Positions 5,913 through 62,402 of a stretch of 64,000 nucleotides of DNA are shown in pieces. The first letter of the stretch is position 1; every line of letters begins with the position of its first letter. Position numbers and translations under genes: made by a program. The notes under the pieces were generated by a model. It saw nothing but the letters and a program-made list of their open reading frames with translations. It had not been told where the DNA came from and made no database searches. Source of the stretch: Haplodiscus bocki (lineage: Eukaryota); assembly GCA_965655095.1 (NCBI GenBank), contig OZ296648.1, positions 106,206,001 to 106,270,000 of the forward strand, given 5' to 3'.

Positions 5913-8900
5913 CAGGCTCCGGTATTTGTTCTAAAGCCAGAGATTTAACATGTCTTTGAAGAGTTGCTGCGACAGTTGCATGCTTAACTGGGACGTCAGC
6001 TTGGATCATACTGATGCAATCGGCCGCCAGTATGGTGCCGTTCATTAGCCTTAGCCGATTGTTGAAGCTCACATGAATTTTTCCATCAGTCTGAACATGT
6101 GCTCCAATGGCTGATTACTTGGCTCAGCTGATCAAAACTTGAGACAAACCCTTTTGGCATGCTTGACCAGTTTGCTTCTGTTTAATGCATGTTTTTTGTC
6201 GGCATTGTGCTAACTGGACAAAAAACAAACATACTTTTCAATTGATAAATGGCTGTTTTTTAAATATTCTCGCGCAGTTTTCGCTATACACATCAACATT
6301 TCGTGGCGCTGCGCTACCAGGGAACTAAAAAAATGCAGTTTCACAGGAACATCAAATCATTGATAATATTGCTTGATGCAAACACATGTTACTAATTGCG
6401 CAAACACATGTTACTAATTGCGTCATTCAAGATCGGGCATCTTCGGATTGTATGTTTTTAATGAATACAACGCATTTCTTAGTAGTGGCCGTTGATGACG
6501 ACTCGTTCATTTATTAGCGAATATGTTAATTGAAATATTTTTTTACGTGTTGCAAAATGTTTCTTTGATTTTTTATGTCTATAATATGCACTTTTTTTGA
6601 ATTGTCTGACGCCTGTATCACAAAATTAAGTATTCGATTTGATTGCTAAAGCTCAGATGAATTTTTCCATCAGTCTGAACATGTGCTCTAAAGGCTGATT
6701 ACTTCGCTCGGCTAATCAAAACTTGAGACAAACCTTTTTAGCATGCTTGACCAGTTTGCTCCTGTTTGATGCATGTTTTTTGTGGGCAGTGTGTTATCTG
6801 GACAAAAAACACAATATACCTTTCAATTAATAAATTGCTGTTTTTTTGATATTTCTCGCTCAGTTTTCGCCAAACACATCAACATTTCGTGGAGCTGCCG
6901 GACCAGGGAAACCGAAAAAAATGGCAAATGAGCCGAACGTCAAATCATTCATATTGTTGATTGATGTGAAAACATTACCAGTTTGGTCATTCAAGATCGG
7001 GCAGCATCGGATTGTATGTTTTTCTAGCATACAACACTTTTCGTAGTGGGCGTTGATGACGAGTCGTTCATTTGTTACGGAATATATTATTGGAAACATT
7101 TTTTAAAAGAGTAGCGAAATGTGTATTTGATTTTTTATGTCTATGATATGCAGTTCTTTTAAAATGTCTACTGCACAAATATATCACGAATTTTAAATTT
7201 TGATTTGACTTCAATCAATCTGCAAAAAAATCAACGGCATAAATTTCAATTATCGCTGTTATTTACTCTTTTCTTTGTTAGAATATTAAAAAACTACTTC
7301 ACTGGCCAACTCATCTGTTCAACTCTCTCAGGCTTTGTGACAGCATTCCTAGTGAAGTTCCCCTTCACAGAATCGTTTTTCGTCGATCAGATTGGTTTAT
7401 AGTTCCTCCTATAGAAAACGAATATGCCAAAGGTTGGGGATATTGGTTAGAGGTGATTTCCAAACACTTCGGCTGTAGCTATAACTTTTACCATTGACAC
7501 TACCACTAAAGGAGTCGAAATTGGACAAGGATTGATTGCATTTAAAAAAGATAATTGACAATTATGCGATTTTTTATGATCTCAATAGTGGCCATGTTTA
7601 CAGAACAAATCATGCATTTTTGTGAGCCTGGTCGCGTAATCATCTTCATATACCTTCGCAACACCTGGGGCAATATAGAAAAGCGTAAGACTTCCAATAA
7701 GTTTTTACTTTCTTGTGCTTATATTCGTATATGTATGTGAAATGTATGGATATATATCTAGATACCTTGGTAGATTTTTCTGTTGGAAGCTGAAGCTGAA
7801 ATTATAATTGAATGTTATCTCTTTTCCATTATTTCCCCAGTTGTTGGAGATGTAATTGGAAAACTTTAGGAGCAGGCTCCGGTATTTGTTCTAAAGCCAG
7901 AGATTTAACATGTCTTTGAAGAGTTGCTGCGACAGTTGCATGCTTAACTGGGACGTCAGCTTGGATCATACTGATGCAATCGGCCGCCAGTATGGTGACG
8001 TTCATTAGCCTTAGCCGATTGTTGAAGCTCACATGAATTTTTCCATCAGTCTGAACATGTGCTCCAATGGCTGATTACTTGGCTCAGCTGATCAAAACTT
8101 GAGACAAACCCTTTTGGCATGCTTGACCAGTTTGCTTCTGTTTAATGCATGTTTTTTGTCGGCATTGTGTTAACTGGACAAAAAACAAACATACCTTTCA
8201 ATTGATAAATGGCTGTTTTTTAAATATTCTCGCGCAGTTTTCGCTATACACATCAACATTTCGTGGCGCTGCGCTACCAGGGAACTAAAAAAATGCAGTT
8301 TCACAGGAACATCAAATCATTCATAATATTGCTTGATGCAAACACATGTTACTAATTGCGCAAACACATGTTACTAATTGCGTCATTCAAGATCGGGCAT
8401 CTTCGGATTGTATGTTTTTAAAGAATACAACGCATTTCTTAGTAGTGGCCGTTGATGACGATTCGTTCATTTATTAGCGAATATGTTAATTGAAATAATT
8501 TTTTACGTGATGCAAAATGTGTCTTTGATTTTTTATGTCTATAATATGCACTTTTTTTGAATTGTCTGACGCCTGTATCACAAAATTAAGTATTCGATTT
8601 GATTGCTAAAGCTCAGATGAATTTTTCCATCAGTCTGAACATGTGCTCTAATGGCTGATTACTTCGCTCGGCTAATCAAAACTTGAGACGAACCTTTTTG
8701 GCATGCTTGACCAGTTTGCTCCTGTTTGATGCATGTTTTTTGTGGGCAGTGTGTTATCTGGACAGAAAACACAATATACCTTTCAATTAATAAATTGCTG
8801 TTTTTTTGATATTTCTCGCTCAGTTTTCGCCAAACACATCAACATTTCGTGGAGCTGCGCGACCAGGGAAACCGAAAAAAAATGGCAAATGAGCCGAACG

Positions 8901-11900
8901 TCAAATCATTCATATTGTTGATTGATGTGAAAACATTACCAGTCTGGTCATTCAAGATCGGGCAGCATCGGATTGTATGTTTTTCTAGCATACAACACTT
9001 TTCGTAGTGGGCGTTGATGACGAGTCGTTCATTTGTTACGGAATATATTATTGGAAACATTTTTTAAAAGAGTAGCGAAATGTGTATTTGATTTTTTATG
9101 TCTATGATATGCAGTTCTTTTAAAATGTCTACTGCACAAATATATCACGAATTTTAAATTTTGATTTGACTTCAATCAATCTGCAAAAAAATCAACGGCA
9201 TAAATTTCAATTATCGCTGTTATTTACTGTTTTCTTTGTTAGAATATTAAAGAACTACTTCACTGGCCAACTCATCTGTTCAACTCTCTCAGGCTTTGTG
9301 ACAGCATTCCTAGTGAAGTTCCCACTTCACAGAATCCTTTTCCGTCGATGAGATTGGTTTATAGTTCATCCTATAGAACGCAAATATGCCAAAGATTGGG
9401 GCATATTGGTTAGAGGTGAACTCCAAACACTTCGGCTGTAGCCATAACTTTTACCATAACATTGACAGTACCATTATAGAAGTCGAAATTGAATAAGAAT
9501 AGAATGCATTTAAAAAAGAGAATTGACAAATATGCGATTTTTTAAGATCTCAATAGTGGCCATGTTTACAGAAGAAATCACGCATTTTTGTGAGCCTGGT
9601 CGCGTAATCATCTTCATATACCTTCGCAACACCTGGGGCAATATAGAAAAGCGTAAGACTTCCAATAAGTTTTTACTTTCTTGTGCTAATATTCGTATAT
9701 GTATGTGAAATGTATGGATATATATCTAGATACCTTGGTAGATTTTTCTGTTGGAAGCTGAAGCTGAAATTATAATTGAATGTTATCTCTTTTCCATTAT
9801 TTCCCCAGTTGTTGGAGATGTAATTGGAAAACTTTAGGAGCAGGCTCCGGTATTTGTTCTAAAGCCAGAGATTTAACATGTCTTTGAAGAGTTGCTGCGA
9901 CAGTTGCATGCTTAACTGGGACGTCAGCTTGGATCATACTGATGCAATCGGCCGCCAGTATGGTGCCGTTCATTAGCCTTAGCCGATTGTTGAAGCTCAC
10001 ATGAATTTTTCCATCAGTCTGAACATGTGCTCCAATGGCTGATTACTTGGCTCAGCTGATCAAAACTTGAGACAAACCCTTTTGGCATGCTTGACCAGTT
10101 TGCTTCTGTTTAATGCATGTTTTTTGTCGGCATTGTGTTAACTGGACAAAAAACAAACATACCTTTCAATTGATAAATGGCTGTTTTTTAAATATTCTCG
10201 CGCAGTTTTCGCTATACACATCAACATTTCGTGGCGCTGCGCTACCAGGGAACTAAAAAAATGCAGTTTCACAGGAACATCAAATCATTCATAATATTGC
10301 TTGATGCAAACACATGTTACTAATTGCGCAAACACATGTTACTAATTGCGTCATTCAAGATCGGGCATCTTCGGATTGTATGTTTTTAAAGAATACAACG
10401 CATTTCTTAGTATTGGCCGTTGATGACGACTCGTTCATTTATTAGCGAATATGTTAATTGAAATATTTTTTACGTGTTGCAAAATGTGTCTTTGATTTTT
10501 TATGTCTATAATATGCACTTTTTTTGAATTGTCTGACGCCTGTATCACAAAATTAAGTATTCGATTTGATTGCTAAAGCTCAGATGAATTTTTCCATCAG
10601 TCTGAACATGTGCTCTAATGGCTGATTACTTCGCTCGGCTAATCAAAACTTGAGACAAACCTTTTTGGCATGCTTGACCAGTTTGCTCCTGTTTGATGCA
10701 TGTTTTTTGTGGGCAGTGTGTTATCTGGACAAAAAACACAATATACCTTTCAATTAATAAATTGCTGTTTTTTTGATATTTCTCGCTCAGTTTTCGCCAA
10801 ACACATCAACATTTCGTGGAGCTGCGCGACCAGGGAAACCGAAAAAAAATGGCAAATGAGCCGAACGTCAAATCATTCATATTGTTGATTGATGTGAAAA
10901 CATTACCAGTTTGGTCATTCAAGATCGGGCAGCATCGGATTGTATGTTTTTCTAGCATACAACACTTTTCGTAGTGGGCGTTGATGACGAGTCGTTCATT
11001 TGTTACGGATTATATTATTGGAAACATTTTTTAAAAGAGTAGCGAAATGTGTATTTGATTCTTTATGTCTATGATATGCAGTTCTTTTAAAATGTCTACT
11101 GCACAAATATATCACGAATTTTAAATTTTGATTTGACTTCAATCAATCTGCAAAAAAATCAACGGCATAAATTTCAATTATCGCTGTTATTTACTGTTTT
11201 CTTTGTTAGAATATTAAAGAACTACTTCACTGGCCAACTCATCTGTTCAACTCTCTCAGGCTTTGTGACAGCATTCCTAGTGAAGTTCCCACTTCACAGA
11301 ATCCTTTTCCGTCGATGAGATTGGTTTATAGTTCATCCTATAGAACGCAAATATGCCAAAGATTGGGGCATATTGGTTAGAGGTGAACTCCAAACACTTC
11401 GGCTGTAGCCATAACTTTTACCATAACATTGACAGTACCATTATAGAAGTCGAAATTGAATAAGAATAGAATGCATTTAAAAAAGAGAATTGACAAATAT
11501 GCGATTTTTTATGATCTCAATAGTGGCCATGTTTACAGAAGAAATCACGCATTTTTGTGAGCCTGGTCGCGTAATCATCTTCATATACCTTCGCAACACC
11601 TGGGGCAATATAGAAAAGCGTAAGACTTCCAATAAGTTTTTACTTTCTTGTGCTTATATTCGTATATGTATGTGAAATGTATGGATATATATCTAGATAC
11701 CTTGGTAGATTTTTCTGTTGGAAGCTGAAGCTGAAATTATAATTGAATGTTATCTCTTTTCCATTATCTCCCCAGTTGTTGGAGATGTAATTGGAAAACT
11801 TTAGGAGCAGGCTCCGGTATTTGTTCTAAAGTCAGAGATTTAACATGTCTTTGAAGAGTTGCTGCGACAGTTGCATGCTTAACTGGGACACCCACTTGGA

Positions 11901-13772
11901 TCATATTGATGCAATCGGCGGCCAGTCTGGTGCCGTTCCTTAGCCGTATTGTTGGAGCTCAGATGAATTTGTCCATCAGTCTAAACATGTGCTCTAATGG
12001 TTGATTACTTCGCTCAGCTGATCAAAAGTTGAGACAAACCCTTTCGGCATACTTGACCAGTTTGCTTCTGTTTAATGCATGTTTTTTGTCGGCATTGTGT
12101 TAACTGGACAAAAAACAAACATACCCTTCAATTGATAAATGGCTGTTTTTTAAATATTCTCGCGCAGTTTTCGCTATACACATCAACATTTCGTGGCGCT
12201 GCGCTACCAGTGAAATAAAAAAATGCAGTTTCACAGGAACAACAAATCATTCATAATATTGCTTGATGCAAACACATGTTACTAATTGCGCAAACACATG
12301 TTACTAATTGCGTCATTCAAGATCGGGCATCTTCGGATTGTATGTTTTTAAAGAATACAACGCATTTCTTAGTAGTGGCCGTTGATGACGACTCGTTCAT
12401 TTATTAGCGAATATGTTAATTGAAATATTTTTTTACGTGTTGCAAAATGTGTATTTGATTTTTTATGTCTATAATTTGCACTTTTTTTGAAATGTCTGAC
12501 TCCTCTATCACAAAATTAAGTATTCGATTTGATTGTTGAAGCTCAGATGAATTTTTCCATCAGTCTGAACATGCGCTCTAATGGCTGATTACTTCGCTCG
12601 GCTAATCAAAACTTGAGACAAACCTTTTTGGCATGCTTGACCAGTTTGCTCCTGTTTGATGCATGTTTTTTGTGGGCAGTGTGTTATCTGGACAAAAAAC
12701 ACAATATACCTTTCAAAAAATAAATGGCTGTTTTTTTTGATATTTCTCGCTCAGTTTTCGCCAAACACATCAACATTTCGTGGAGCTGCGCGACCAGGGA
12801 AACCGAAAAAAAATGGCAAATGAGCCGAACGTCAAATCATTCATATTGTTGATTGATGTGAAAACATTACCAGTTTGGTCATTCAAGATCGGGCAGCATC
12901 GGATTGTATGTTTTTCAAGCATACAACACTTTTCGTAGTGGGCGTTGATGACGAGTCGTTCATTTGTTACGGAATATATTATTGGAAACATTTTTTAAAA
13001 GAGTAGCGAGATGTGTATTTGATTTTTTATGTCTATGATATGCAGTTCTTTTAAAATGTCTACTGCACAAATTTATCACGAATTTTAAATTTTGATTTGA
13101 CTTCAATCAATCTGCAAAAAAATCAACGGCATAAATTTCAATTATCGCTGTTATTTACTGTTTTCTTTGTTAGAATATTAAAGAACTACTTCACTGGCCA
13201 ACTCATCTGTTCAACTCTCTCAGGCTTTGTGACAGCATTCCTAGTGAAGTTCCCACTTCACAGAATCCTTTTCCGTCGATGAGATTGGTTTATAGTTCAT
13301 CCTATAGAACGCAATTATGCCAAAGATTGGGGCATATTGGTTAGAGGTGAACTCCAAACACTTCGGCTGTAGCCGTAACTTTTACCATAACATTGACAGT
13401 ACCATTATAGAAGTCGAAATTGAATAAGAATAGAATGCATTTAAAAAAGAGAATTGACAAATATGCGATTTTTTATGATCTCAATAGTGGCCATGTTTAC
13501 AGAAGAAATCACGCATTTTTGTGAGCCTGGTCGCGTAATCATCTTCATATACCTTCGCAACACCTGGGGCAATATAGAAAAGCGTAAGACTTCCAATAAG
13601 TTTTTACTTTCTTGTGCTTATATTCGTATATGTATGTGAAATGTATGGATATATATCTAGATACCTTGGTAGATTTTTCTGTTGGAAGCTGAAGCTGAAA
13701 TTATAATTGAATGTTATACTCTTTTCCATTATTTCCCCAGTTGTTGGAGATGTAATTGGAAAACTTTAGGAG
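5913..13772. repeat. HOR domain 2: four tandem ~1.96-1.97 kb units (3'-truncated B fused to 5'-truncated A)
   Basis: Anchor spacings are 1960, 1968, 1967 and 1965. The same novel junction TATTCGATTTGA|TTG(C/T)T(A/G)AAGCTCAGATG occurs at ~6642, ~8602, ~10569 and ~12532. Confidence 0.93.
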
Positions 13773-16595
13773 CAGGCTCCGGTATTTGTTCCAAAGTCAG
13801 AGATTTAACATGTCTTTGAAGAGTTGCTGCGACAGTTGCATGCTTAACTCGGACGTCAGCTTGGATCATACTGATGCAATCGGCCGCCAGTATGGTGCCG
13901 TTCATTAGCCTTAGCCGTATTGTTGAAGCTCAGATGAATTTTTCCATCAGTCTGAACATGTGCTCTAATGGCTGATTACTTGGCTCAGCTGATCAAAACT
14001 TGAGACAAACCCTTTCGGCATGCTTGACCAGTTTGCTTCTCTTTAATGCATGTTTTTTGTCGGCCGTGTGTTAACTGGACAAAAAACAAACATACCTTTC
14101 AATTGATAAATGGCTGTTTTTTAAATTTTCTCGCCCAGTTTTCGCTATACACATCAACATTTCGTGGCGCTGCGTTACCAGGGAACTAAAAAAATGCAGT
14201 TTCACAAGAACATCAAATCATTCATAATATTGCTTGATGCAAACACATGTTACTAATTGCGCAAACACATGTTACTAATTGCGTCATTCAAGATCGGGCA
14301 TCTTCGGATAGCATGTTTTTAAAGAATACAACGCATTTCTTAGTAGTGGCCGTTGATGACGACTCGTTCATTTATTAGCGAATATGTTATTTGAAATATT
14401 TTTTTACGTGTTACGAAATGTGTATTTGATTTTTTATGTCTATAACATCCAATTTTTTTGAATTGTCTGACGCCTATATCACAAAATTAAGTATTCGATT
14501 TGACTTCAACCTTTCTGAAAAAATGACCAGCATAAATTTCAACTGTTGCGGTCCCTTACTATTTTTTGTTCAATTATCAAAACAAATTCAGTGGCCAATT
14601 CATCATTTCAACTCTTTCAGGCTTTGCGAGTAAGAATCCTTGGTGAAGTTACCCCTTCCATGAATCGTTTCTTTCGAACGGATTGATTTAGATTTCGTCC
14701 TAAAGCAAGCGATATTGCCAAACAGTGGAGGACATTGGTTAGATGTCAACTCCAAAGATTCCAAAGCAAAGCCTAACCTTTGCTCTTGACACTACCACTA
14801 TGAGACGGGAAAATATATAAGAATTGATTGCAATAATAGGGATATGACAAATATACGATTTGTATAATCTCAGTAGCGGCCCTATTTACAAAACAAATCG
14901 CGCTATTTTTTTGTGAGCCTGATGCCCCAATTTTTTTCATTTACCTCTCCAACACCTGAAGGCATTTTAAGAAAGCGTAGGGCTTTCAAAAAGTTGTTCA
15001 CATTTTTTCTACCTTTATTTGTATATGTATGTGAAGTGTATTGATATATTTTTGAATAGTTTGGTAGATTTTTATGTGTTGGAAGGTAAATGTGAAAATA
15101 TTCAAAATCTTACGCTCTTCCCTAATGCCCCCAAGTGTTGGGGAGGTAAATGGAAAAATTTGAGAGCAGGCTCCGGTAATTGTTCTAGAGTCAGAGATTT
15201 AGCATGTCTTTGAAGAGTTGCTGCGACAGTTGCATGCTCAACTGTGACGTCAACTTGGATCATACTGATGCAATCGGCCGCCAGCCTGGTGCCGTTTATT
15301 AGCCTTAGCCGTATTGTTGAAGCTCAGATGAATTTTTCCATCAGTCTGAACATGTGCTCTAATTCCTGATTACTTCGCTCAGCTAATCAAAACTTGAGAC
15401 AAACCTTTTTGGCATGCTTGACCAGTTTGCTCCTGTTTGATGCATGTTTTTTTGTGGGCAGTGTGTTATCTGGACAAAAAACTATACCTTTCAATTAATA
15501 AATGGCTGTTTTTTTATATATTTCTCGCTCAGTTTTCGCCAAACACATCAACATTTCGTGGAGCTGCGCGACCAGGGAAACCGAAAAAAAATGGCAAATG
15601 AGCCGAACGTCAAATCATTCATATTGTTGATTGATGTGAAAACATTACCAGTTTGGTCATTCAAGATCGGGCAGCATCGGATTGTATGTTTTTCAAGCAT
15701 ACAACACTTTTCGTAGTGGGCGTTGATGACGAGTCGTTCATTTGTTACGGAATATATTATTGGAAACATTTTTTAAAAGAGTAGCGAGATGTGTATTTGA
15801 TTTTTTATGTCTATGATATGCAGTTCTTTTAAAATGTCTACTGCACAAATTTATCACGAATTTTAAATTTTGATTTGACTTCAATCAATCTGCAAAAAAA
15901 TCAACGGCATAAATTTCAATTATCGCTGTTATTTACTGTTTTCTTTGTTAGAATATTAAAAAACTACTTCACTGGCCCACTCATCTGTTCAAATCTCTCA
16001 GGCTGTGACAGCATTCCTAGTGAAGTTCCCACTTCACAGAATCCTTTTCCGTCGATGAGATTGGTTTATAGTTCATCCTATAGAACGCGATTATGCCAAA
16101 GATTGGGGCATATTGGTTAGAGGTGAACTCCAAACACTTCGGCTGTAGCCGTAACTTTTACCATAACATTGACAGTACCATTATAGAAGTCGAAATTGAA
16201 TAAGAATAGAATGCATTTAAAAAAGACAATTGACAAATATGCGATTTTTTATAATCTCAATAGTGGCCATGTTTACAGAAGAAATCACGCATTTTTGTGA
16301 GCCTGGTCGCGTAATCATCTTCATTTACCTTCGCAACACCTGGGGCAATATAGAAAAGCGTAAGACTTCCAATAAGTTTTTACTTTCTTGTGCTTATATT
16401 CGTATATGTATGTGAAATGTATGGATATATATCTAGATACCTTGGTAGATTTTTCTGTTGGAAGCTGAAGCTGAAATTATAATTGAATGTTATACTCTTT
16501 TCCATTATTTCCCCAGTCGTTGGAGATGTAATTTGAAAACTTTAGGAGCAGGCTCCGGTAATTGTTCTGAAGTCAGAGATTTAACATGTCTTTGA

Positions 16596-16628
16596 GAGAT
16601 TAAGAGATAGGAAAAGATTTGAGAGATA
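16596..16628. other. Private 33-bp purine-rich insertion in one monomer
   Basis: TTTGA|GAGATTAAGAGATAGGAAAAGATTTGAGAGATA|ACAGTTG, versus TTTGAA(G/C)AGTTG in sister copies. This monomer is 1428 bp versus ~1395. Confidence 0.95.
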
Positions 16629-17722
16629 ACAGTTGCTGCGACAGTTGCATGCTTAACTGGGACGTCAACTTGGATCATACTGATGCAATCGGCCGCCAGT
16701 CTGGTGGCGTTTATTAGCCTTAGCCGTATTGTTGAAGCTCAGATGAATTTTTCCATCAGTCTGAACATGTGCTCTAATGGCTGATTACTTGGCTCAGCTG
16801 ATCAAAACTTGAGACAAACCCTTTCGGCATGCTTGACCAGTTTGCTTCTGTTTAATGCATGTTTTTTGTCGGCAGTGTGTTAACTGGACAAAAGACAAAC
16901 ATACCTTTCAATTGATGAATGGCTGTTTTTTAAATTTTCTCGCGCAGTCTTCGCTATACACATCAACATTTCGTGGCGCTGCGCTACCAGGGAACTAAAA
17001 AAATGCAGTTTCACAGGAACATCAAATCATTCATAATATTGCTTGATGCAAACACATGTTACTAATTGCGCAAACACATGTTACTAATTGCGTCATTCAA
17101 GATCGGGCATCTTCGAATTGTATGTTTTTAATGAATACAACGCATTTCTTAGTAGTGGCCGTTGATGACGACTCGTTCATTTATTAGCGAATATGTTACT
17201 TGAAATATTTTTTTACGTGTTGCAAAATGTGTATTTGATTTTTTATGTCTATAATTTGCACTTTTTTTGAAATGTCTGACTCCTCTATCACAAAATTAAG
17301 TATTCGATTTGACTTCAACCTTTCTGAAAAAATGACCAGCATAAATTTCAACTGTTGCGGTCCCTTACTATTTTTTGTTCAATTATCAAAACAAATTCAG
17401 TGGCCAATTCATCATTTCAACTCTTTCAGGCTTTGCGAGTAAGAATCCTTGGTGAAGTTACCCCTTCCATGAATCGTTTCTTTCGAACGGATTGATTTAG
17501 ATTTCGTCCTAAAGCAAGCGATATTGCCAAACAGTGGAGGACATTGGTTAGATGTCAACTCCAAAGATTCCAAAGCAAAGCCTAACCTTTGCTCTTGACA
17601 CTACCACTATAAGACGGGAAAATATATAAGAATTGATTGCAATAATAGGGATATGACAAATATACGATTTGTAAAATCTCAGTAGCGCCCCTATTTACAA
17701 AACAAATCACGCTATTTTTTGT

Positions 17723-17983
17723 GAGCCTGATGCCCTAATTTTTTTCATTTACCTCTCCAACACCTGAAGGCATTTTAAGAAAGCGTAAGGCTTTCAAAAA
17801 GTTTTTCACATTTTTTCTACCTATATTTGTATATGTGTGTGAAGTGTATTGATATATTTTTGATAGTTTGGTAGATTTTTATGTGTTGGAAGGTAAATGT
17901 GAAAATATCATTCAAAATCTTACGCTCTTTCCTAATGCCCCGAGGTGTTGGGGAGGTAAATGGAAAAATTTGAGAGCAGGCTC
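17723..17983. repeat. Inverted-repeat module, representative B-family copy
   Basis: Left arm GAGCCTGATGCCCTAATTTTTTTCATTTACCTCTCCAACACCTGAAGGCATT...GCGTAAG...TTTTCACATTT is complementary, in register, to right arm AAATGTGAAAA...CTTACGC...AATGCCCCGAGGTGTTGGGGAGGTAAATGGAAAAATTTGAGAGCAGGCTC. Confidence 0.85.
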
Positions 17984-19106
17984 CGGTAATTGTTCTAGAG
18001 TCAGAGATTTAGCATGTCTTTGAAGAGTTGCTGCGACAGTTGCATGCTTAACTGGGACGTCAACTTGGATCATACTGATGCAATCGGCCGCCAGTCTGGT
18101 GCCGTTTATTAGCCTTAGCCGTATTGTTGAAGCTCAGATGAATTTTTCCATCAGTCTGAACATGTGCTCTAATGGCTGATTACTTCGCTCAGCTAATCAA
18201 AACTTGAGACAAACCTTTTTGGCATGCTTGACCAGTTTGCTCCTGTTTGATGCATGTTTTTTGTGGGCAGTGTGATATCTGGACAAAAAACAAACAATAT
18301 ACCTTTCAATTAATAAATGGCTGTTTTTTTTAAATTTCTCGCTCAGTTTTCGCCAAACACATTAACATTTCGAGGAGCTGCGCGACCACGGAAACCAAAA
18401 AATGCAAATGAGCAGGAACGTCAAATCATTCATATTGTTGATTGATGTTAAAACATTACCACCTGCGTTATTCAAGATTGGGCATCTTCGGATTGTACGT
18501 TTTTGTAGCATACAACACATTTCGTAGTGGCCGTTGATGACGAGTCGTTCATTTGTTACGGAATATATTATTGGAAACATTTTTTAAAAGAGTAGCGAAA
18601 TGTGTATTTGATTTTTTATGTCTATGATATGCAGTTCTTTTAAAATGTCTACTGCACAAATGTATCACGAATTTTAAATTTTGATTTGACTTCAATCAAT
18701 CTGCAAAAATCAACGGCATAAATTTCAATTATCGCTGTCATTTACTGTTTTTTTTGTTAGAATATTTAAAAACTACTTCACCGGTAAACTCATCGTTCAA
18801 CTCTCTCAGGCTTTGTGACAGAATTCCTAGTGAAGTTCCCACCTCAGAGAATCCTTTTCCGTCGATGAGATTGGTTTATAATAGTTCATCCTATAGAACG
18901 CGATTATGCCAAAGATTGGGGCATTTTGGTTAGAGGTGAACTCCAAACACTTCGGCTGTAGCCATAACTTTTACCATTGACACTACCATTATAGAAGTCG
19001 AGATTGGATAAGGATTGAATGCATTTAAAAAAGAGAAATGACAAATATGCGATTTTTTATAATCTCAATAGTGGCCATATTTACAGAACAAATCACGCGT
19101 TTTTGT

Positions 19107-19364
19107 GAGCCTGGTCGCGTAATCATCTTCATTTACCTTCCCAACACCTGGGGCATTATAGAAAAGCGTAAGACTTCCAATAAGTTTTTACTTTCTTGCA
19201 CTTATATTCGTATATGTATGTGAAATGTATGGATATATATATCTAGATACCTTGGTAGATTTTTCTGTTGGAAGGTAAAGGTGAAAGTTTAATTGAATGT
19301 TATACGCTTTTTCATAATGCCCCAGGTGTTGGAGGTGTAAATGGAAAAATTTGGAAGCAGGCTC
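19107..19364. mobile_element. MITE-like ~260 bp inverted-repeat module (representative A-family copy; present in every intact monomer)
   Basis: Begins GAGCCTG and ends CAGGCTC. CCAACACCTGGGGCATTAT (19141-19159) is the exact reverse complement of ATAATGCCCCAGGTGTTGG (19314-19332). Further pairings CATTTAC/GTAAATG and AAAAGCGTA/TACGCTTTT fall in register. No TSD or transposase is seen, so the MITE call is inference; the inverted repeat itself is certain. Confidence 0.55.
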
Positions 19365-22300
19365 CGGTAATTGTTCTAGAGTCAGAGATTTAACATGTCT
19401 ATGAATAGTTGCTGCGACAGTTGCATGCTTAACTGGGACGTCAACTTGGATCATACTGATGCAATCGGCCGCCAGTCTGGTGCCGTTTATTAGCCTTAGC
19501 CGTATTGTTGAAGCTCAGATGATTTTTTCCATCAGTCTAATTATGTGCTCTAATGGTTGATTACTTCGCTCTACTGATCAAAACTTGAGACAAACCCTTT
19601 CGGCATGCTTGACCAGTTTGCTTCTGTTTAATGCATGTTTTTTGTCGGCAGTGTGTTAACTGGACAAAAAACAAACAATATACCTTTCAATTGATAAATG
19701 GCTGTTTTTTAAAATTTCTCGCTCAGTTTTCGCCAAACACATTAACATTTCGAGGAGCTGCGCGACCAGGGAAACCAAAAAATGCAAATGAGCAGGAACG
19801 TCAACTCTTTCATATTGTTGATTGATGTGTAAACATTACCACCTGCGTCATTCAAGATTGGGCATCTTCGGATTGTACGTTTTTCTAGCATACAACACAT
19901 TTCGTAGTGGCCGTTGATGACGAGTAGTTCATTTGTTACGGAATATATTATTGGAAACATTTTTTAAAACCGTTGCGAAATGTGTCTTCGATTTTTTATC
20001 TCTATAATATGCAGTTCTATTACATTGTCTACTGCACAAATTTATCAGAGTTTTTAAATTTTGGTTTGACTTCAATCAATCTGCGTAAATCACTGGCATA
20101 AGTTTCAATTATCGCTATCTTTTACTGTTTATTTTTCGTTAGAATATCAAAAAAGAACTTCACTGGCCAACTCATCATTTCAACTCTTTCAGGCTGTAGA
20201 AAGCGAATATGCCAAAGATTGGGGGATATTGGTTAGAAGTGGACTCCAAACACTTCGGCTGTAGCCATAACTTTTACCATTGACACTACCACTATAGGAG
20301 GCGAAATTGGATAAGGATTCATTGCATTTTAAAAAGATAATTGACAATTTTGCGTTCTTTTTAATCTCAATAGTGGCCATATTTACAGAATAAATCACGC
20401 ATTTTTGTGAGCCTGGTGCCTTGATCTTTTTCATTCACCTCCCCAAAACCTGGGGGCAAAGTAAAAAAGCGTCAGACTTCCGATAAGTTTTTTACTTTCT
20501 TGTATTTATATTCGTATTTGTATGTGAAGTGTATGGATATATATCTAGATACCTTGGTAGATTTTTCTGTTGGGAGGTAAAGGTGAAAATATAATTAAAT
20601 GTTATACGCTTTTTCATAATGCGCCCAGGTGTTGGAGATGTAAATGGAAAAATTTGGAGGCAGGCTCCGGTAATCGTTCTAGAGTCAGAGATTTAACGTG
20701 TCTATGAAGAGTTGCTGCGACTGTTGCATGCTTAACTGGGACGTCAACTTGGATCATACTGATGCAATCGGCTGCCAGTCTGGTGCCGTTTAGTAGCCTT
20801 AGCCGTATTGTTGAAGCTCAGATGAATTTTTCCATCAGTCTAAACATGTGCTTTAATGGTTGATTACTTGGCTCAGCTGATCAAAACTTGAGACAAACAC
20901 TTTCGGCATGCTTGACCAGTTTGCTTCTGTTTAATGCATGTTTTTTGTCGGGAGTGTGTTAACTGGACAAAATACAAACAATATACCTTTCAAATATTAA
21001 ATGGCTGTTTTTTAAAATTTCTCGCGCAGTTTTCGCTATACACATCAACATTTCCTGGCGCTGCGCTACCAGGGAACTAAAAAAATGCAGTTTCACAGGA
21101 ACATCAAATCATTCATAATATTGCTTGATGCAAACACATGTTACTAATTGCGCAAACACATATTACTAATTGCGTCATTCAAGATCGGGCATCTTCGGTT
21201 TGTATGTTTTTAAAGAATACAACGCATTTCTTAGTAGTGGCCGTTGATGACGACTCGTTCATTTATTAGCGAATATGTTACTTGAAATATTTTTTTACGT
21301 GTTGCAAAATGTGTATTTGATTTTTTATGTCTATAATTTGCACTTTTTTTTGAAATGTCTGACTCCTCTATCACAAAATTAAGTATTCGATTTGACTTCA
21401 ACCTTTCTGAAAAAATGACCAGCATAAATTTCAACTGTTGCGGTCCCTTACTATTTTTTGTTCAATTATCAAAACAAATTCAGTGGCCAATTCATCATTT
21501 CAACTCTTTCAGGCTTTGCGAGTAAGAATCCTTGGTGAAGTTACCCCTTCCATGAATCGTTTCTTTCGAACGGATTGATTTAGATTTCGTCCTAAAGCAA
21601 GCGATATTGCCAAACAGTGGAGGACATTGGTTAGATGTCAACTCCAAAGATTCCAAAGCAAAGCCTAACCTTTGCTCTTGACACTACCACTATAAGACGG
21701 GAAAATATATAAGAATTGATTGCAATAATAGGCATATGACAAATATACGATTTGTAAAATCTCAGTAGCGCCCCTATTTACAAAACAAATCACGCTATTT
21801 TTTGTGAGCCTGATGCCCTAATTTTTTTCATTTACCTCTCCAACACCTGAAGGCATTTTAAGAAAGCGTAAGGCTTTCAAAAAGTTTTTCACATTTTTTC
21901 TACCTATATTTGTATATGTGTGTGAAGTGTATTGATATATTTTTGATAGTTTGGTAGATTTTTATGTGTTGGAAGGTAAATGTGAAAATATCATTCAAAA
22001 TCTTACGCTCTTTCCTAATGCCCCGAGGTGTTGGGGAGGTAAATGGAAAAATTTGAGAGCAGGCTCCGGTAATTGTTCTAGAGTCAGAGATTTAGCATGT
22101 CTTTGAAGAGTTGCTGCGACAGTTGCATGCTTAACTGGGACGTCAACTTGGATCATACTGATGCAATCGGCCGCCAGTCTGGTGCGGTTTATTAGCCTTA
22201 GCCGTATTGTTGAAGCTCAGATGAATTTTTCCATCAGTCTGAACATGTGCTCTAATGGCTGATTACTTCGCTCAGCTAATCAAAACTTGAGACAAACCTT

Positions 22301-25300
22301 TTTGGCATGCTTGACCAGTTTGCTCCTGTTTGATGCATGTTTTTTGCGGGCAGTGTGTTATCTGGACAAAAAACAAACAATATACCTTTCAATTAATAAA
22401 TGGCTGTTTTTTTTTAAATTTCTCGCTCAGTTTTCGCCAAACACATTAACATTTCGAGGAGCTGCGCGACCACGGAAACCAAAAAATGCAAATGAGCAGG
22501 AACGTCAAATCATTCATATTGTTGATTGATGTGAAAACATTACCACCTGCGTTATTCAAGATTGGGCATCTTCGGATTGTACGTTTTTGTAGCATACAAC
22601 ACATTTCGTAGTGGCCGTTGATGACGAGTCGTTCATTTGTTACGGAATATATTATTGGAAACATTTTTTAAAAGAGTAGCGAAATGTGTATTTGATTTTT
22701 TATGTCTATGATATGCAGTTCTTTTAAAATGTCTACTGCACAAATGTATCACGAATTTTAAATTTTGATTTGACTTCAATCAATCTGCAAAAATCAACGG
22801 CATAAATTTCAATTATCGCTGTCATTTACTGTTTTTTTTTGTTAGAATATTTAAAAACTACTTCACCGGTAAACTCATCGTTCAACTCTCTCAGGCTTTG
22901 TGACAGAATTCCTAGTGAAGTTCCCACCTCAGAGAATCCTTTTCCGTCGATGAGATTGGTTTATAATAGTTCATCCTATAGAACGCGATTATGCCAAAGA
23001 TTGGGGCATTTTGGTTAGAGGTGAACTCCAAACACTTCGGCTGTAGCCATAACTTTTACCATTGACACTACCATTATAGAAGTCGAGATTGGATAAGGAT
23101 TGAATGCATTTAAAAAAGAGAAATGACAAATATGCGATTTTTTATAATCTCAATAGTGGCCATATTTACAGAACAAATCACGCGTTTTTGTGAGCCTGGT
23201 CGCGTAATCATCTTCATTTACCTTCCCAACACCTGGGGCATTATAGAAAAGCGTAAGACTTCCAATAAGTTTTTACTTTCTTGCACTTATATTCGTATAT
23301 GTATGTGAAATGTATGGATATATATATCTAGATACCTTGGTAGATTTTTCTGTTGGAAGGTAAAGGTGAAAGTTTAATTGAATGTTATACGCTTTTTCAT
23401 AATGCCCCAGGTGTTGGAGGTGTAAATGGAAAAATTTGGAAGCAGGCTCCGGTAATTGTTCTAGAGTCAGAGATTTAACATGTCTATGAATAGTTGCTGC
23501 GACAGTTGCATGCTTAACTGGGACGTCAACTTGGATCATACTGATGCAATCGGCCGCCAGTCTGGTGCCGTTTATTAGCCTTAGCCGTATTGTTGAAGCT
23601 CAGATGATTTTTTCCATCAGTCTAAACATGTGCTCTAATGGTTGATTACTTCGCTCTACTGATCAAAACTTGAGACAAACCCTTTCGGCATGCTTGACCA
23701 GTTTGCTTCTGTTTAATGCATGTTTTTTGTCGGCAGTGTGTTAACTGGACAAAAAACAAACAATATACCTTTCAATTGATAAATGGCTGTTTTTTAAAAT
23801 TTCTCGCTCAGTTTTCGCCAAACACATTAACATTTCGAGGAGCTGCGCGACCAGGGAAACCAAAAAATGCAAATGAGCAGGAACGTCAAATCATTCATAT
23901 TGTTGATTGATGTGTAAACATTACCACCTGCGTCATTCAAGATTGGGCATCTTCGGATTGTACGTTTTTCTAGCATACAACACATTTCGTAGTGGCCGTT
24001 GATGACGAGTAGTTCATTTGTTACGGAATATATTATTGGAAACATTTTTTAAAACCGTTGCGAAATGTGTCTTCGATTTTTTATCTCTATAATATGCAGT
24101 TCTATTACATTGTGTACTGCACAAATTTATCAGAGTTTTTAAATTTTGGTTTGACTTCAATCAATCTGCGTAAATCACTGGCATAAGTTTCAATTATCGC
24201 TATCTTTTACTGTTTATTTTTCGTTAGAATATCAAAAAAGAACTTCACTGGCCAACTCATCATTTCAACTCTTTCAGGCTTTGCGAGTAAGAATCCTTGG
24301 TGAAGTTACCCCTTCCATGAATCGTTTCTTTCGAACGGATTGATTTAAATTTCGTCCTAAAGCAAGCGATATTGCCAAACAGTGGAGGACATTGGTTAGA
24401 TGTCAACTCCAAAGATTCCAAAGCAAAGCCTAACCTTTGCTCTTGACACTACCACTATAAGACGGGAAAATATATAAGAATTGATTGCAATAATAGGGAT
24501 ATGACAAATATACGATTTGTAAAATCTCAGTAGCGCCCCTATTTACAAAACAAATCACGCTATTTTTTGTGAGCCTGATGCCCTAATTTTTTTCATTTAC
24601 CTCTCCAACACCTGAAGGCATTTTAAGAAAGCGTAAGGCTTTCAAAAAGTTTATCACATTTTTTCTATCTATATTTGTATATGTGTGTGAAGTGTATTGA
24701 TATATTTTTGATAGTTTGGTAGATTTTTATGTGTTGGAAGGTAAATGTGAAAATATCATTCAAAATCTTACGCTCTTTCCTAATGCCCCCATGTGTTGGG
24801 GAGGTAAATGGAAAAATTTGAGAGCAGGCTCCGGTAATTGTTCTAGAGTCAGAGATTTAGCATGTCTTTGAAGAGTTGCTGCGACAGTTGCATGCTTAAC
24901 TGGGACGTCAACTTGGATCATACTGATGCAATCGGCCGCCAGTCTGGTGCCGTTTATTAGCCTTAGCCGTATTGTTGAAGCTCAGATGAATTTTTCCATC
25001 AGTCTGAACATGTGCTCTAATGGCTGATTACTTCGCTCAGCTAATCAAAACTTGAGACAAACCTTTTTGGCATGCTTGACCAGTTTGCTCCTGTTTGATG
25101 CATGTTTTTTGTGGGCAGTGTGTTATCTGGACAAAAAACAAACAATATACCTTTCAATTAATAAATGGCTGTTTTTTTTATATTTCTCGCTCAGTTTTCG
25201 CCAAACACATTAACATTTCGAGGAGCTGCGCGACCACGGAAACCAAAAAATGCAAATGAGCAGGAACGTCAAATCATTCATATTGTTGATTGATGTGAAA

Positions 25301-28300
25301 ACATTACCACCTGCGTTATTCAAGATTGGGCATCTTCGGATTGTACGTTTTTGTAGCATACAACACATTTCGTAGTGGCCGTTGATGACGAGTCGTTCAT
25401 TTGTTACGGAATTTATTATTGGAAACATTTTTTAAAAGAGTAGCGAAATGTGTATTTGATTTTTTATGTCTATGATATGCAGTTCTTTTAAAATGTCTAC
25501 TGCACAAATGTATCACGAATTTTAAATTTTGATTTGACTTCAATCAATCTGCAAAAATCAACGGCATAAATTTCAATTATCGCTGTCATTTACTGTTTTT
25601 TTTGTTAGAATATTTAAAAACTACTTCACCGGTCAACTCATCGTTCAACTCTCTCAGGCTTTGTGACAGAATTCCTAGTGAAGTTCCCACCTCAGAGAAT
25701 CCTTTTCCGTCGATGAGATTGGTTTATAATAGTTCATCCTATAGAACGCGATTATGCCAAAGATTGGGGCATTTTGGTTAGAGGTGAACTCCAAACACTT
25801 CGGCTGTAGCCATAACTTTTACCATTGACACTACCATTATAGAAGTCGAGATTGGATAAGGATTGAATGCATTTAAAAAAGAGAAATGACAAATATGCGA
25901 TTTTTTATAATCTCAATAGTGGCCATATTTACAGAACAAATCACGCGTTTTTGTGAGCCTGGTCGCGTAATCATCTTCATTTACCTTCCCAACACCTGGG
26001 GCATTATAGAAAAGCGTAAGACTTCCAATAAGTTTTTACTTTCTTGCACTTATATTCGTATATGTATGTGAAATGTATGGATATATATATCTAGATACCT
26101 TGGTAGATTTTTCTGTTGGAAGGTAAAGGTGAAAGTTTAATTGAATGTTATACGCTTTTTCATAACGCCCCAGGTGTTGGAGGTGTAAATGGAAAAATTT
26201 GGAAGCAGGCTCCGGTAATTGTTCTAGAGTCAGAGATTTAACATGTCTATGAATAGTTGCTGCGACAGTTGCATGCTTAACTGGGACGTCAACTTGGATC
26301 ATACTGATGCAATCGGCCGCCAGTCTGGTGCCGTTTATTAGCCTTAGCCGTATTGTTGAAGCTCAGATGATTTTTTCCATCAGTCTAATTATGTGCTCTA
26401 ATGGTTGATTACTTCGCTCTACTGATCAAAACTTGAGACAAACCCTTTCGGCATGCTTGACCAGTTTGCTTCTGTTTAATGCATGTTTTTTGTCGGCAGT
26501 GTGTTAACTGGACAAAAAACAAACAATATACCTTTCAATTGATAAATTGCTGTTTTTTAAAATTTCTCGCTCAGTTTTCGCCAAACACATTAACATTTCG
26601 AGGAGCTGCGCGACCAGGGAAACCAAAAAATGCAAATGAGCAGGAACGTCAAATCATTCATATTGTTGATTGATGTGTAAACATTACCACCTGCGTCATT
26701 CAAGATTGGGCATCTTCGGATTGTACGTTTTTCTAGCATACAACACATTTCGTAGTGGCCGTTGATGACGAGTAGTTCATTTGTTACGGAATATATTATT
26801 GGAAACATTTTTTAAAACCGTTGCGAAATGTGTCTTCGATTTTTTATCTCTATAATATGCAGTTCTATTACATTGTGTACTGCACAAATTTATCAGAGTT
26901 TTTAAATTTTGGTTTGACTTCAATCAATCGGCGTAAATCACTGGCATAAGTTTCAATTATCGCTATCTTTTACTGTTTATTTTTCGTTAGAATATCAAAA
27001 AAGAACTTCACTGGCCAACTCATCATTTCAACTCTTTCAGGCTGTAGAAAGCGAATATGCCAAAGATTGGGGGATATTGGTTAGAAGTGGACTCCAAACA
27101 CTTCGGCTGTAGCCATAACTTTTACCATTGACACTACCACTATAGGAGGCGAAATTGGATAAGGATTCATTGCATTTTAAAAAGATAATTGACAATTTTG
27201 CGTTCTTTTTAATCTCAATAGTGGCCATATTTACAGAATAAATCACGCATTTTTGTGAGCCTGGTGCCTTGATCTTTTTCATTCACCTCCCCAAAACCTG
27301 GGGGCAAAGTAAAAAAGCGTCAGACTTCCGATAAGTTTTTTACTTTCTTGTATTTATATTCGTATTTGTATGTGAAGTGTATGGATATATATCTAGATAC
27401 CTTGGTAGATTTTTCTGTTGGGAGGTAAAGGTGAAAATATAATTAAATGTTATACGCTTTTTCATAATGCGCCCAGGTGTTGGAGATGTAAATGGAAAAA
27501 TTTGGAAGCAGGCTCCGGTAATTGTTCTAGAGTCAGAGATTTAACGTGTCTATGAAGAGTTGCTGCGACTGTTGCATGCTTAACTGGGACGTCAACTTGG
27601 ATCATACTGATGCAATCGGCTGCCAGTCTGGTGCCGTTTATTAGCCTTAGCCGTATTGTTGAAGCTCAGATGAATTTTTCCATCAGTCTAAACATGTGCT
27701 TTAATGGTTGATTACTTGGCTCAGCTGATCAAAACTTGAGACAAACACTTTCGGCATGCTTGACCAGTTTTCTTCTGTTTAATGCATGTTTTTTGTCGGC
27801 AGTGTGTTAACTGGACATAAAACAAACAATATACCTTTCAATTAATAAATGGCTGTATTTTAAAATTTCTCGCGCAGTTTTCGCTATACACATCAAAATT
27901 TCGTGGCGCTGCGCTACCAGGGAACTAAAAAAATGCAGTTTAACAGGAACATCAAATCATTCATGTTATTGCTTGATGCAAACACATGTTACTAATTGCG
28001 CAAACACATCGCTATTAATTGCGTCAATCAAGATCGGGCATTTTCGGATTGTATGTTTTTAAAGAATACAACGCATTTCTTAGTAGTGGCCGTTGATGAC
28101 GACTCGTTCATTTATTAGCGAATATGTTATTTGAAATATTTTTTTACGTGTTGCAACATGTGTATTTGATTTTCTATGTCTATAATATGCACTTTTTTTG
28201 AAATGTCTGACGCCTATATCACAAAATCAAGTATTCGATTTGACTTCAACCTTTCTGAAAAAATGACCAGCATAAATTTCAACTGTTGCGGTCCCTTACT

Positions 28301-31300
28301 ATTTCTTTGTTCAATTATCAAGACAAATTCAGTGGCCAATTCATCATTTCAACTTTTTCAGTCTTTGCGAGTAAGAATCCTTAGTGAATTTACCCCCTCC
28401 TTGAATCGTTTCTTTCGAACGGATTGGTTTAGAGTTCCGCCTATAGCAAGCGATATTGCCAAGCAGTGGAGGAAATTGGTTAGAAGTCAACTCCAAAGAC
28501 TCTGGCCATAGACCTAACTTCTGCTCATGACACTAGCACTATAAGAGGCGAAAATAAATAAGGATTGATTGCAATAATACGGATATGACAATTATACGGT
28601 TTTTATAATCTGAGTAGTGGCCATATTTACAAAACAAATCACGCTGTTTTTTTGTGGGCCTGATGCCCTAATTTTCTTTTCATTTAATTCTCCAACACCA
28701 GAAGGCATTTTAAAAAAGTGTAAGGCTCTCAAAAAGGTTTTCACAATTTTTTCTAACTTTATTTGTATATGTATGTGAAGTGTAATGATATAATTTTAGA
28801 TAGTTTGGTAGATTTTTATGTGTTGGAAGGTAAATGTGAAATTATCATTCAACATCTTACGCTCTTTCCTAATGCCCCCAAGTGTTGGGGAGGTAAATGA
28901 AAATAATTATGGGAGCAGGCTCCGGGAATTGTTCTAGAATTGGGGTTTTAACATGTCTCCGACAAGTTGCTGCGACAGTTGCATGCTTAACTGGGACGTG
29001 GACTTGGATCATACTGATGCAATCGGCGGCCAGTCTGGTACCGTTCCTTAGCAGTATTGTTGGAGCTCAGCTGTTTTTTTCCATCAGTCTAAACATGTGC
29101 TCTATTGGTTGATTACTTCGCTCAGCTAATCAAAACTTGAGGCAAACCCTGTTGGCATGCTTGGCAAATTTCCTCCTGCTGAAAGCATGTTTTTTGTTGG
29201 CAGTGTGTTAACTGGACAAAAAACACATTATACCTTTCATTCATTAAATGGCTGTTTTTTAAAATTTCTCGCTCAGTTTTCGATAAACACATTAACATTT
29301 CGAGGAGCTGCGCGGCCAGGGAAACCAAAAAATGCAAATAAGCAGGAACGTCAAATCATTCATATTGTTGATTGATGTGAAAACATTACCAGTTTGGTCA
29401 TTCAAGGTCGGGCAACATCGGATTGTATGTTTTTCTAGCAAACAACACATTTCGTAGTGGCCGTTGATGACGAGTCGTTCATTTGTTACGGAATATATTA
29501 TTGGAAACATTTTTTAAAAGAGTAGCGAAATGTGTATTTGATTTTCTATGTCTATGATATGCAGTTCTTTTAAAATATCTACTGCCCAAGTATCTCACGA
29601 ATTTTAAATTTTGATTTGACTTCAATCAATCTGCAAAAATCAACGGCATAAATTTCAATTATCGCTGTCATTTACTGTTTTTTTGTTAGAATATTAAAAA
29701 ACTACTTCACCGGCCAACTCATTGTTCAACTCTCTCAGGCTTTGTGACAGAATTCCTAGTGAAGTTCCCACTTCAGAGAATCCTTTTCCGTCGATGAGAT
29801 TGGTTTATATTTCATCCTATAGAACGCGATTATGCCAAAGATTGGGGCATTTTGGTTAGAGGTGAACTCCAAACACTTCGGCTGTAGCCATAACTTTTAC
29901 CATTGACACTACCATTATAGAAGTCGAGATTGGATAAGGATTGAATGCATTTAGAAAAGAGAAATGACAAATATGCGATTTTTTATAATCTCAATAGTGG
30001 CCATATTTACAGAACAAATCACGCGTTTTTGTGAGCCTGGTCGCGTAATCATCTTCATTTACCTTCCCAACACCTGGGGCATTTTAGAAAAGCGTAAGAC
30101 TTCCAATAAGTTTTTACTTTCTTGTACTTATATTCGTATATGTATGTGAAATGTATGGATATATATATCTAGATACCTTGGCAGATTTTTCTGTTAGAAG
30201 CTAAAGGTGAAAATTTAATTGAATGTTATACGCTTTTTCATAATGCTTTGGTGTTGGAGGTGGAAATGGAAAAATTTGGAAGCAGGCTCCGGTAATTGTT
30301 CTAGAGTCAGAGATTTAACATGTCTATGAAGAGTTGCTGCGACAGTTGCATGCTTAACTGGGACGTCAACTTGGATCATACTGATGCAATCGGCCGCCAG
30401 TCTGGTGCCGTTTATTAGCCTTAGCCGTATTGTTGAAGCTCAGATGAATTTTTCCATCAGTCTAAACATGTGCTCTAATGGTTGATTACTTCGCTCTACT
30501 GATCAAAACTTGAGACAAACCCTTTCGGCATGCTTGACCAGTTTGCTTCTGTTTAATGCATGTTTTTTGTCGGCAGTGTGTTAACTGGACAAAAAACACA
30601 ATATACCTCTCAATTTTTAAATGGCTCTTTTGTAGAATTTCTCGCGCAGTTTTCTCTATACACATCAGTATTTCGTGGAGCTGCGCGACCAGGGAAAGCA
30701 AAAAGTGAAAATGAGCAGGAGCGTCAAATCATTCATATTGTTGATTGATGTGAAAACATTACCACTTGCGTCATTCAGGTTCGGGCATCTTCGGATTTTA
30801 TGATTTCTTAGCAAACAACACATTTCGTAGTGGCCGTTGATGACGAGTCGTTCATTTGTCACGGAATATATTATTGGAAACATTTTTTTAAACCTTTGCG
30901 AAATGTGCATTTGATTTTTTATGTCTATAAAATGAATTTCTTTTAAAATGTCTACTGCACAAATATATGGGAATTTTTAAATTTTGGTTGGACTTCAATC
31001 ATTCTGCGTAAATCACTGGCATAAGTTTCAATTATCGCTGTCATTTACTGTTTATTTTTCCTTAGAATAATAAAAAAACTTCACTGGCCAACTCATCATT
31101 TTAACTCTCAGGCTTTGTGACCGAGCATTCCTAGTGAAGTTCCCCCTTCACAGAATCGTTTTTCGTTGATCAGATTGGTTTATAGTTCCTCCTATACAAA
31201 GCGAATATGCCAAAGATTGGGGGATATTGGTTAGAGGTGATTTCCAAACGCTTCGGCTGTAGCTATATCTTTTACCATTGACACTACCACTAAAGGAGTC

Positions 31301-31656
31301 AAAATTGGATAAGGATTGATTGCATTTAAAAAAGATAATTCACAATTATTCGTTTTTTAAATCTCAATAGTGGCCATTTTTACAGAATAAAACACGCATT
31401 TTTGTGAGCCTGGTGCCCTGATCTTTTTCATTTACCTCCCGAACACCTCGGGACAAATTAAAAAAGCGTCAGACTTCCGATAAGTTTTTTACTTTCTTGT
31501 ACTTGTATTCGTATATGTATGTGAAGTGTATGGATATGTATCTAGATACCTTGGTAGATTTTTCTGTTGGAAGGTAAAGGTTAAAATATAATTAAATGTT
31601 TTACGCTTTTTCATAATGCCCCAGGTGTTGGAGATGTAAATGCAAAAATTTGTGAG

Positions 31657-48500: not shown

Positions 48501-48703
48501 AAAATAAAAAAGCGTCAGACTTCCGATAAGTTTTTTACTTTCTTGTACTTATGGTCGTATATGTATGTGAAGTGTATGGATATATGTCTAGATACCTTGG
48601 TAGTTTTTTCTGTTGGAAGGTAAAGGTGAAAATATCATTGAATGTTATACGCTTTTTCCTAATGCCCCCAGGTGTTAGAGCTGTAAATGGGAAAATCTGG
48701 GAG
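42552..48703. repeat. HOR domain 5: three tandem ~2.05 kb units (second, independent B/A deletion fusion)
   Basis: Spacings 2053, 2050 and 2049. Junction TTTCGAACTGATT|(T/G)AACCCTTTTGGCATG at ~43462, ~45514 and ~47562, with a fourth copy at ~52369. Confidence 0.92.
46403..46661. repeat. Inverted-repeat module, representative right-hand A copy
   Basis: GAGCCTG...TTTTTCATTTACCTCCCCAACACCTGGGGGCAAAATAAAAAAGCGT pairs with ACGCTTTTTCATAATGCCCTCAGGTGTTGGAGATGTAAATGGAAAA...CAGGCTC. Confidence 0.85.
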
Positions 48704-59576: not shown

Positions 59577-59624
59577 GTAGTGGGCGTTGATGACGAGTCG
59601 GTAGTGGGCGTTGTTGACGAGTCG
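59577..59624. repeat. 24-bp tandem duplication GTAGTGGGCGTTGATGACGAGTCG (one mismatch in the second copy)
   Basis: Read directly; also visible as the duplicated RLV(N/I)NAHY peptide in ORF 59358-59657. Confidence 0.95.
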
Positions 59625-62354: not shown

Positions 62355-62402
62355 GTAGTGGGCGTTGATGACGAGTCGGTAGTGGGCGTTGATGACGAGT
62401 CG
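62355..62402. repeat. Same 24-bp tandem duplication, perfect copy
   Basis: Lies 2778 bp (one dimer) downstream of the 59577 copy. Confidence 0.95.

Follow-up and report, generated by a model that had tools for sequence, protein, structure and literature searches.

The fold-back carried by a tandem array in the genome of Haplodiscus bocki is very probably the palindromic outer tip of an old Maverick/Polinton terminal repeat, amplified head to tail within a larger unit from the right end of an element on C1, and its hairpin would be present by descent. The window, a stretch of 64,000 nucleotides corresponding to C1:106206001-106270000, lies within this array, and searches were extended to the 1.5 Gb of the genome. 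Comparisons were pairwise and multiple, and natural copies were used throughout.

Results

The fold-back module and pairing across its copies

The focal module had been described, from its letters alone, as a long imperfect inverted repeat, and folding bore this out. As single-stranded DNA it reached -44.4 kcal/mol compared with -19.7 kcal/mol for shuffled sequences (z = -8.2), and as RNA -103.6 compared with -56.2 kcal/mol (z = -10.8). A repeat search located complementary arms of 52 nt at 19130-19181 and 19292-19343 (81% complementarity), and the perfect 19-bp stem reported in the preliminary description was recovered at 19141-19159 and 19314-19332, its 19-nt word occurring on both strands within the module. 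The words GAGCCTG and CAGGCTC, taken in that description as the termini, are present; they are not the true ends, as they sit 43 nt inside them, and in dispersed copies the palindrome continues over this distance on each side to AGTAGT... and ...ACTACT. The left-arm segment retained outside the focal module (Table 1) forms the inner boundary of the palindrome, where it adjoins the body of the terminal repeat, and the tip motif ending this segment is AATAGTGG in the focal copy and AGTAGTGG in B-type copies. No remnant of the right outer arm was found in the array, the alignment score being no better than that of 650 of 2000 shuffles.

BLAST of the module against the window returned exactly 43 full-length copies, all on the plus strand, in identity groups of ~87-100% and ~74-80%. 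The earlier estimate of about 43 copies and the retention of the fold-back in both the A and B families were thus upheld, as was the mutation of the termini in several right-hand copies, GAGCCTG/CAGGCTC being altered from 44353 rightwards. All 43 copies folded better than their own shuffles (mean -84.7 vs -55.8 kcal/mol), the weakest group comprising the copies at 7624-16555, with about -68 kcal/mol and z of -2 to -4. No tRNA genes were found in the window, and open reading frames at 16000-24000 were short, none of them credible. The stretch is covered by short contigs of DNA-like runs from two samples, at high depth.

Pairing was then compared across 49 distinct array copies. In the structure of the focal copy 84% of cells pair, a value that the choice of this structure biases upwards. 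Compensatory (two-sided) changes occurred at 5 pairs vs 3-8 when the partner was slid by 1-3 columns, and covariation in the stem was rejected because it did not surpass these slid controls. Column conservation was barely higher at paired than at unpaired positions (0.874 vs 0.849). In the dispersed copies, complementarity of the two arms within a copy averaged 0.83, and identity between copies was 0.81 whether an arm was compared with the same or with the opposite arm; from these values the ancestral arms appear to have been near-perfectly symmetric, and the present mismatches fit independent decay. Neither the compensatory changes in the array nor the arm comparison of the dispersed copies gave a sign of selection on pairing.

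These data bear on the proposal that the array is a working battery of hairpin RNAs, in which transcribed monomers would supply a ~100-bp stem to be diced into endogenous small RNAs, for instance silencing the Maverick family. Each copy does have a predicted long RNA stem, between -68 and -104 kcal/mol, and since the stem is homologous to dispersed mobile tips such small RNAs would have targets. However, the 64-kb window gave no match to any Rfam family at gathering scores, the near-equal conservation of paired and unpaired columns came with no compensatory excess, much of the pairing has been lost in whole subfamilies, and descent would fully explain the structure, so that a hairpin-RNA battery is considered unlikely. 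With no compensatory excess and pairing badly decayed in some subfamilies, the hairpin looks like an inherited passenger with no maintained function, as far as this can be read from sequence.

Anatomy of the array and a second array on C5

The whole array occupies C1:106188223-106273131, about 85 kb with 58 fold-back copies, and exceeds the window at both ends. Most copies are 1.30-1.42 kb apart, and in some blocks the spacing is 1.96-2.05 kb. A monomer of ~1.38 kb consists of ~870 bp of element terminal repeat lacking its outermost ~43 bp and ~510 bp of DNA confined to the array, here called the rest segment; the element sequence runs from right to left, with the tip at the right (Table 1). 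Every array copy lacks the outermost 43 nt of the tip, and for this reason the amplified unit is read as a truncated right terminal repeat together with adjacent DNA. A genome search with the rest segment gave 65 first-pass places and, among the matches listed, all 43 were in the array; no homology was found to either full element (C1, C7) or to dispersed DNA, and the segment may be old flanking DNA.

Table 1 Positions of array features in the window.
Feature	Position	Strand	Basis or remark
Interior of the tandem array	1..64000	.	BLAST copies; genome-wide search
Array-only rest segment (~510 bp), not part of the element	17984..18493	.	Genome search; no match found in the two full elements
Body of the Maverick terminal inverted repeat within the monomer	18494..19066	-	65-70% identity over ~800-880 bp to dispersed element ends
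Tip within the example monomer 17984-19364	19067-19364		Outer 43 nt missing
Outer part of the left arm, 40 nt, retained	19067..19106	.	Alignment with dispersed copies; junctions of all array copies
Fold-back module, focal copy (258 bp)	19107..19364	.	Inner portion of the Maverick-tip palindrome; fold z, arms, stem
Starts of fold-back copies	216, 1591, 2896, 4284, 5663, 7624, 9592, 11559, 13523, 14915, 16299, 17723, 19107, 20409, 21806, 23192, 24571, 25955, 27257, 28658, 30033, 31406, 32767, 34129, 35490, 36852, 38214, 39575, 40937, 42300, 44353, 46403, 48452, 49835, 51211, 53260, 54629, 56016, 57391, 58777, 60169, 61555, 62958		BLAST

Monomer families differ by ~17% in the fold-back, nearly as much as separate dispersed copies do from one another, which argues that the array is old. 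BLAST gave no difference in the module between the copy at 19107 and that at 23192, which starts 4085 bp away, an example of re-copying in blocks of monomers. The long monomers (1.96-2.05 kb; window 7624-13779 and 42300-48455) contain, in addition, part of a further 510-bp segment (query 140-510). Two short duplicated units were also seen: a 22-bp unit present twice, GCAAACACATGTTACTAATTGC, marks a subset of monomers, and a 24-bp unit present twice, GTAGTGGGCGTTGATGACGAGTCG, was confined to 59577-59624 and 62355-62402, in two monomers towards the right end of the window.

A variant-spelled tip word occurs in at least 27 copies, all on one strand and spaced by ~2.34 kb, over at least 72 kb of C5 (C5:10403108-10475371), and in this series the Maverick tip of the C1 array has been amplified a second time, independently. 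That one tip has been amplified at two loci, with periods that differ, is what might be expected if the palindromes acted as DNA structures, cruciforms or fork barriers, that either drove amplification or served a chromosome function such as that of a centromere. Long palindromes are fragile, and this general property would also favour such a role. Nevertheless, the junction of the C1 unit lies between the rest segment and the inner end of the terminal repeat, away from the palindrome, and the 1.38-kb array is present at one place, the one other array, on C5, having a different period; a structural role seems quite improbable on these grounds.

Dispersed copies and the true ends of the fold-back

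The stem word, with one mismatch allowed, also matched outside the array. When a diverged copy from C7 was used as query, 567 first-pass places were obtained on large contigs; among 40 scored candidates, many were ~350-bp matches on both strands, corresponding to solo fold-backs, and several were matches of 1-1.3 kb starting with the fold-back. A 29-nt tip word, searched with at most 3 mismatches, occurred at 189 places vs 0 for the reversed control.

Thirteen dispersed copies were aligned together with their flanks. The alignment defined a unit of 346-357 bp (~353 bp) made of 140-nt arms and a ~75-nt loop, which starts with AGTAGTGGCC and ends with GGCCACTACT. Most dispersed copies have the tip motifs AGTAGTGG...CCACTACT and 5'-AGTAGT...ACTACT-3' ends. 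The solo copies are flanked by 6-bp target duplications, matching at 6/6 positions in L045 and L049, 5/6 in L044 and 4/6 in L046, so that the dispersed solo copies with target-site duplications sought by the preliminary description do exist. Where a tip is joined to an element body, its inner boundary had a duplication score of 1-3/6, and the long copies have homologous right flanks and unrelated left flanks. In these joined copies the fold-back is thus the real end of a longer element and not a nested insertion.

There are two possible origins of the solo fold-backs: the tip may move alone, carrying two valid ends, or the two tips of an element may recombine as direct repeats and leave a solo tip, in the manner of a solo LTR. 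Either route is possible, since integrase-type end motifs stand on each side of the tip and since a palindrome, being its own reverse complement, serves both as a direct and as an inverted repeat when present at both ends.

Two solo fold-backs on C2 (C2:122983686-122984042 and C2:122668848-122669204), 315 kb apart, have the same flanks and the same target duplication, from which they are read as one insertion copied by segmental duplication. Elsewhere on C2 (C2:86260600-86265500, L031/L036) two weakly related copies, 4304 bp apart, have 66% identity over ~300 bp and a 29-nt stem match; this looks like a duplicated segment with a more distant relative of the fold-back.

The parent element

Homology of the C7 copy to other long copies continues for kilobases. 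Copies from left ends match those from right ends, in inverted orientation, over ~920-940 bp, beyond which they differ; this gives the length of the terminal inverted repeat. The parent is a decayed element of 12-18 kb, and the fold-back is the extreme tip of its ~0.9-kb terminal inverted repeats. On C7 it extends from C7:98391 to ~110637 (12.2 kb) and is flanked by the target duplication GATATC/GATGTC (5/6); the inverted right end, at C7:110201-110609, retains only one arm of the tip.

Both the C7 and the C1 copy have, at 1.4-4.3 kb from the left end, a polymerase remnant that covers most of a 1228-aa polymerase. Indeed, tblastn with the intact 1228-aa open reading frame (L067) matched over most of its length at C7:99802-102701 (E 1e-39) and C1:106170971-106173612 (E 9e-53). 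In Pfam this frame itself gave only a weak Endonuclease_7 match; its relatives (72-87% identity) carry the protein-primed family-B polymerase domain PF03175, often together with PF02945, and a protein atlas gave a lead in the same direction. An open reading frame fragment 2.8 kb from the left end found 6655 first-pass places in the genome, many of them inside ~1200-aa frames, and of the 150 matches that were scored, many fall within 800-1350-aa open frames. The genome thus has very numerous related genes for protein-primed polymerases, some of which look intact.

Pfam gave nothing usable for 17 open reading frame fragments of the two element copies, and the relatives that a conserved 138-aa fragment recovered from the genome were all broken. 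In these fragments, from two decayed copies that are ~30% diverged and full of stops, no remnants of integrase, capsid, packaging ATPase or protease were recognised. The C7 copy also has a 176-aa open frame with no Pfam match (L065:3-530, minus strand). In its right terminal repeat (L065:4084-4425, minus strand; C7:110084-110425) there is a cysteine-rich 114-aa frame with a weak DUF7245 match below the cut-off (E 2.7e-4) and what may be a C2H2 zinc finger. A C2H2-like motif also opens the intact 1228-aa polymerase frame, so that the first part of the polymerase gene may fall within the terminal repeat.

Intact Mavericks have been defined by 6-bp target duplications, 5'-(AGT)2...(ACT)2-3' ends and terminal repeats (PMC8097293), and Maverick/Polinton elements have been reported to be abundant in stony corals (PMC11131425). 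The present element resembles them in its 6-bp duplications, its (AGT)2...(ACT)2 ends, terminal repeats of hundreds of base pairs, size of 12-18 kb and family-B polymerase near one end, and on these features the parent is, judged by its sequence, a Maverick/Polinton. That the fold-back is instead an ordinary cut-and-paste MITE or Foldback-like element, lying beside Maverick sequence and captured by the satellite, is very unlikely: it would account for short, non-coding solo copies with terminal inverted repeats and target duplications, but not for the flanks of the long copies, which make the tip a true element end, the lack of a duplication at the inner boundary, the same tip-body junction at both element ends, the match of the 6-bp duplication and the AGTAGT/ACTACT ends to Mavericks, or the arms devoid of tandem subrepeats. 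The preliminary description had proposed a satellite that captured, or derives from, an element with terminal inverted repeats; derivation is supported by the dispersed solo copies with their duplications, whereas capture of an ordinary MITE or Foldback element is not, the source being the tip of a Maverick terminal repeat.

Link between the C1 element and the array

The C1 element (C1:106170001-106188526) is colinear with C7:98391-110637 throughout, left tip and right terminal repeat included. An extra ~6.8 kb between them, at C1:106179112-106185892 (L038/L034), has no counterpart on C7 and probably represents nested insertions; a 212-aa open frame in this extra DNA had no Pfam match. The array starts exactly at the right terminal repeat of the C1 element, and its first copy extends leftwards by at least 1.8 kb into the interior of the right end, a sequence that later monomers lack.

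The fold-back at the left end of the C1 element is 0.80-0.84 identical to the array copies, no closer than other dispersed copies are. Terminal-repeat identity was consequently rejected as proof of a single C1 insertion, as it does not discriminate, and the target duplication on the right-hand side is unreadable because the outer 43 nt are missing. It is on the colinearity with C7 that both C1 ends would belong to one insertion.

Discussion

The derivation from a Maverick tip suggests the following course of events. A Maverick would have inserted at the C1 site by means of its integrase, with the 6-bp duplication expected from its family, and would then have decayed. A 1.38-kb segment comprising most of the right terminal repeat and neighbouring DNA would have been duplicated head to tail, some 58 times, probably by unequal exchange, with later re-copying in blocks of two or three monomers and the rise of the longer monomer variant with its second, partial 510-bp segment. 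The fold-back would have been carried along by descent while its arms decayed in a roughly neutral way.

With its 58 head-to-tail monomers, of which ~870 of 1380 bp match the terminal repeat of the element, the array is a transposon-derived satellite, which is a known kind, and it is the source, the palindromic tip and the recurrence that are unusual. Like other satellites of this kind it consists of a mobile-element fragment amplified head to tail with adjacent DNA and re-copied in higher-order blocks; unlike them it has a Maverick terminal repeat as its source, and amplification of the tip took place at two loci, whose units differ in length. Maverick/Polinton elements were not found described as a source of satellites in a literature search that covered titles and abstract openings incompletely.

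The parent differs from Maverick/Polinton elements as described in that the outermost ~353 bp of each terminal repeat are palindromic, giving two tip motifs per end. No description of palindromic Maverick tips or of Maverick-derived MITEs came up in the literature search, the coverage of which was incomplete. The solo 353-bp fold-backs are comparable to MITEs and solo LTRs, being short and non-coding, with inverted ends and target duplications. The fold-backs resemble Drosophila Foldback and Galileo elements in their long inverted arms, which can fold back, and in being associated with rearrangements. The arms of Foldback and Galileo consist of tandem subrepeats, and their duplications are of 9 or 7 bp. 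The present fold-backs, unlike these, have arms with no tandem repeat and duplications of 6 bp, not 9 bp, and membership among Foldback-like elements was rejected on this basis.

More tentatively, a Maverick lineage might be envisaged in which each end carries a self-contained, two-tipped palindromic mini-element, a 'mini-Maverick', that inserts alone as the 353-bp fold-back. Snap-back copying at the terminus, while the element undergoes protein-primed replication, might give rise to it, and it would predispose the ends of the element to form satellites with kilobase units, as would have happened at least twice (C1, C5). This wider proposal is a possibility to which we give limited credence.

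A strong hairpin may be merely inherited, and calls for caution when taken as evidence of function. An origin is given here for most of the ~85-kb satellite, a resident virus-like transposon having supplied, with its right terminal repeat, ~870 bp of each 1.38-kb unit. Maverick/Polinton ends can accordingly seed satellites and leave MITE-like solo fold-backs, and the palindromic tips amount to four integrase-type ends per element, which bears on how Mavericks are replicated and integrated.
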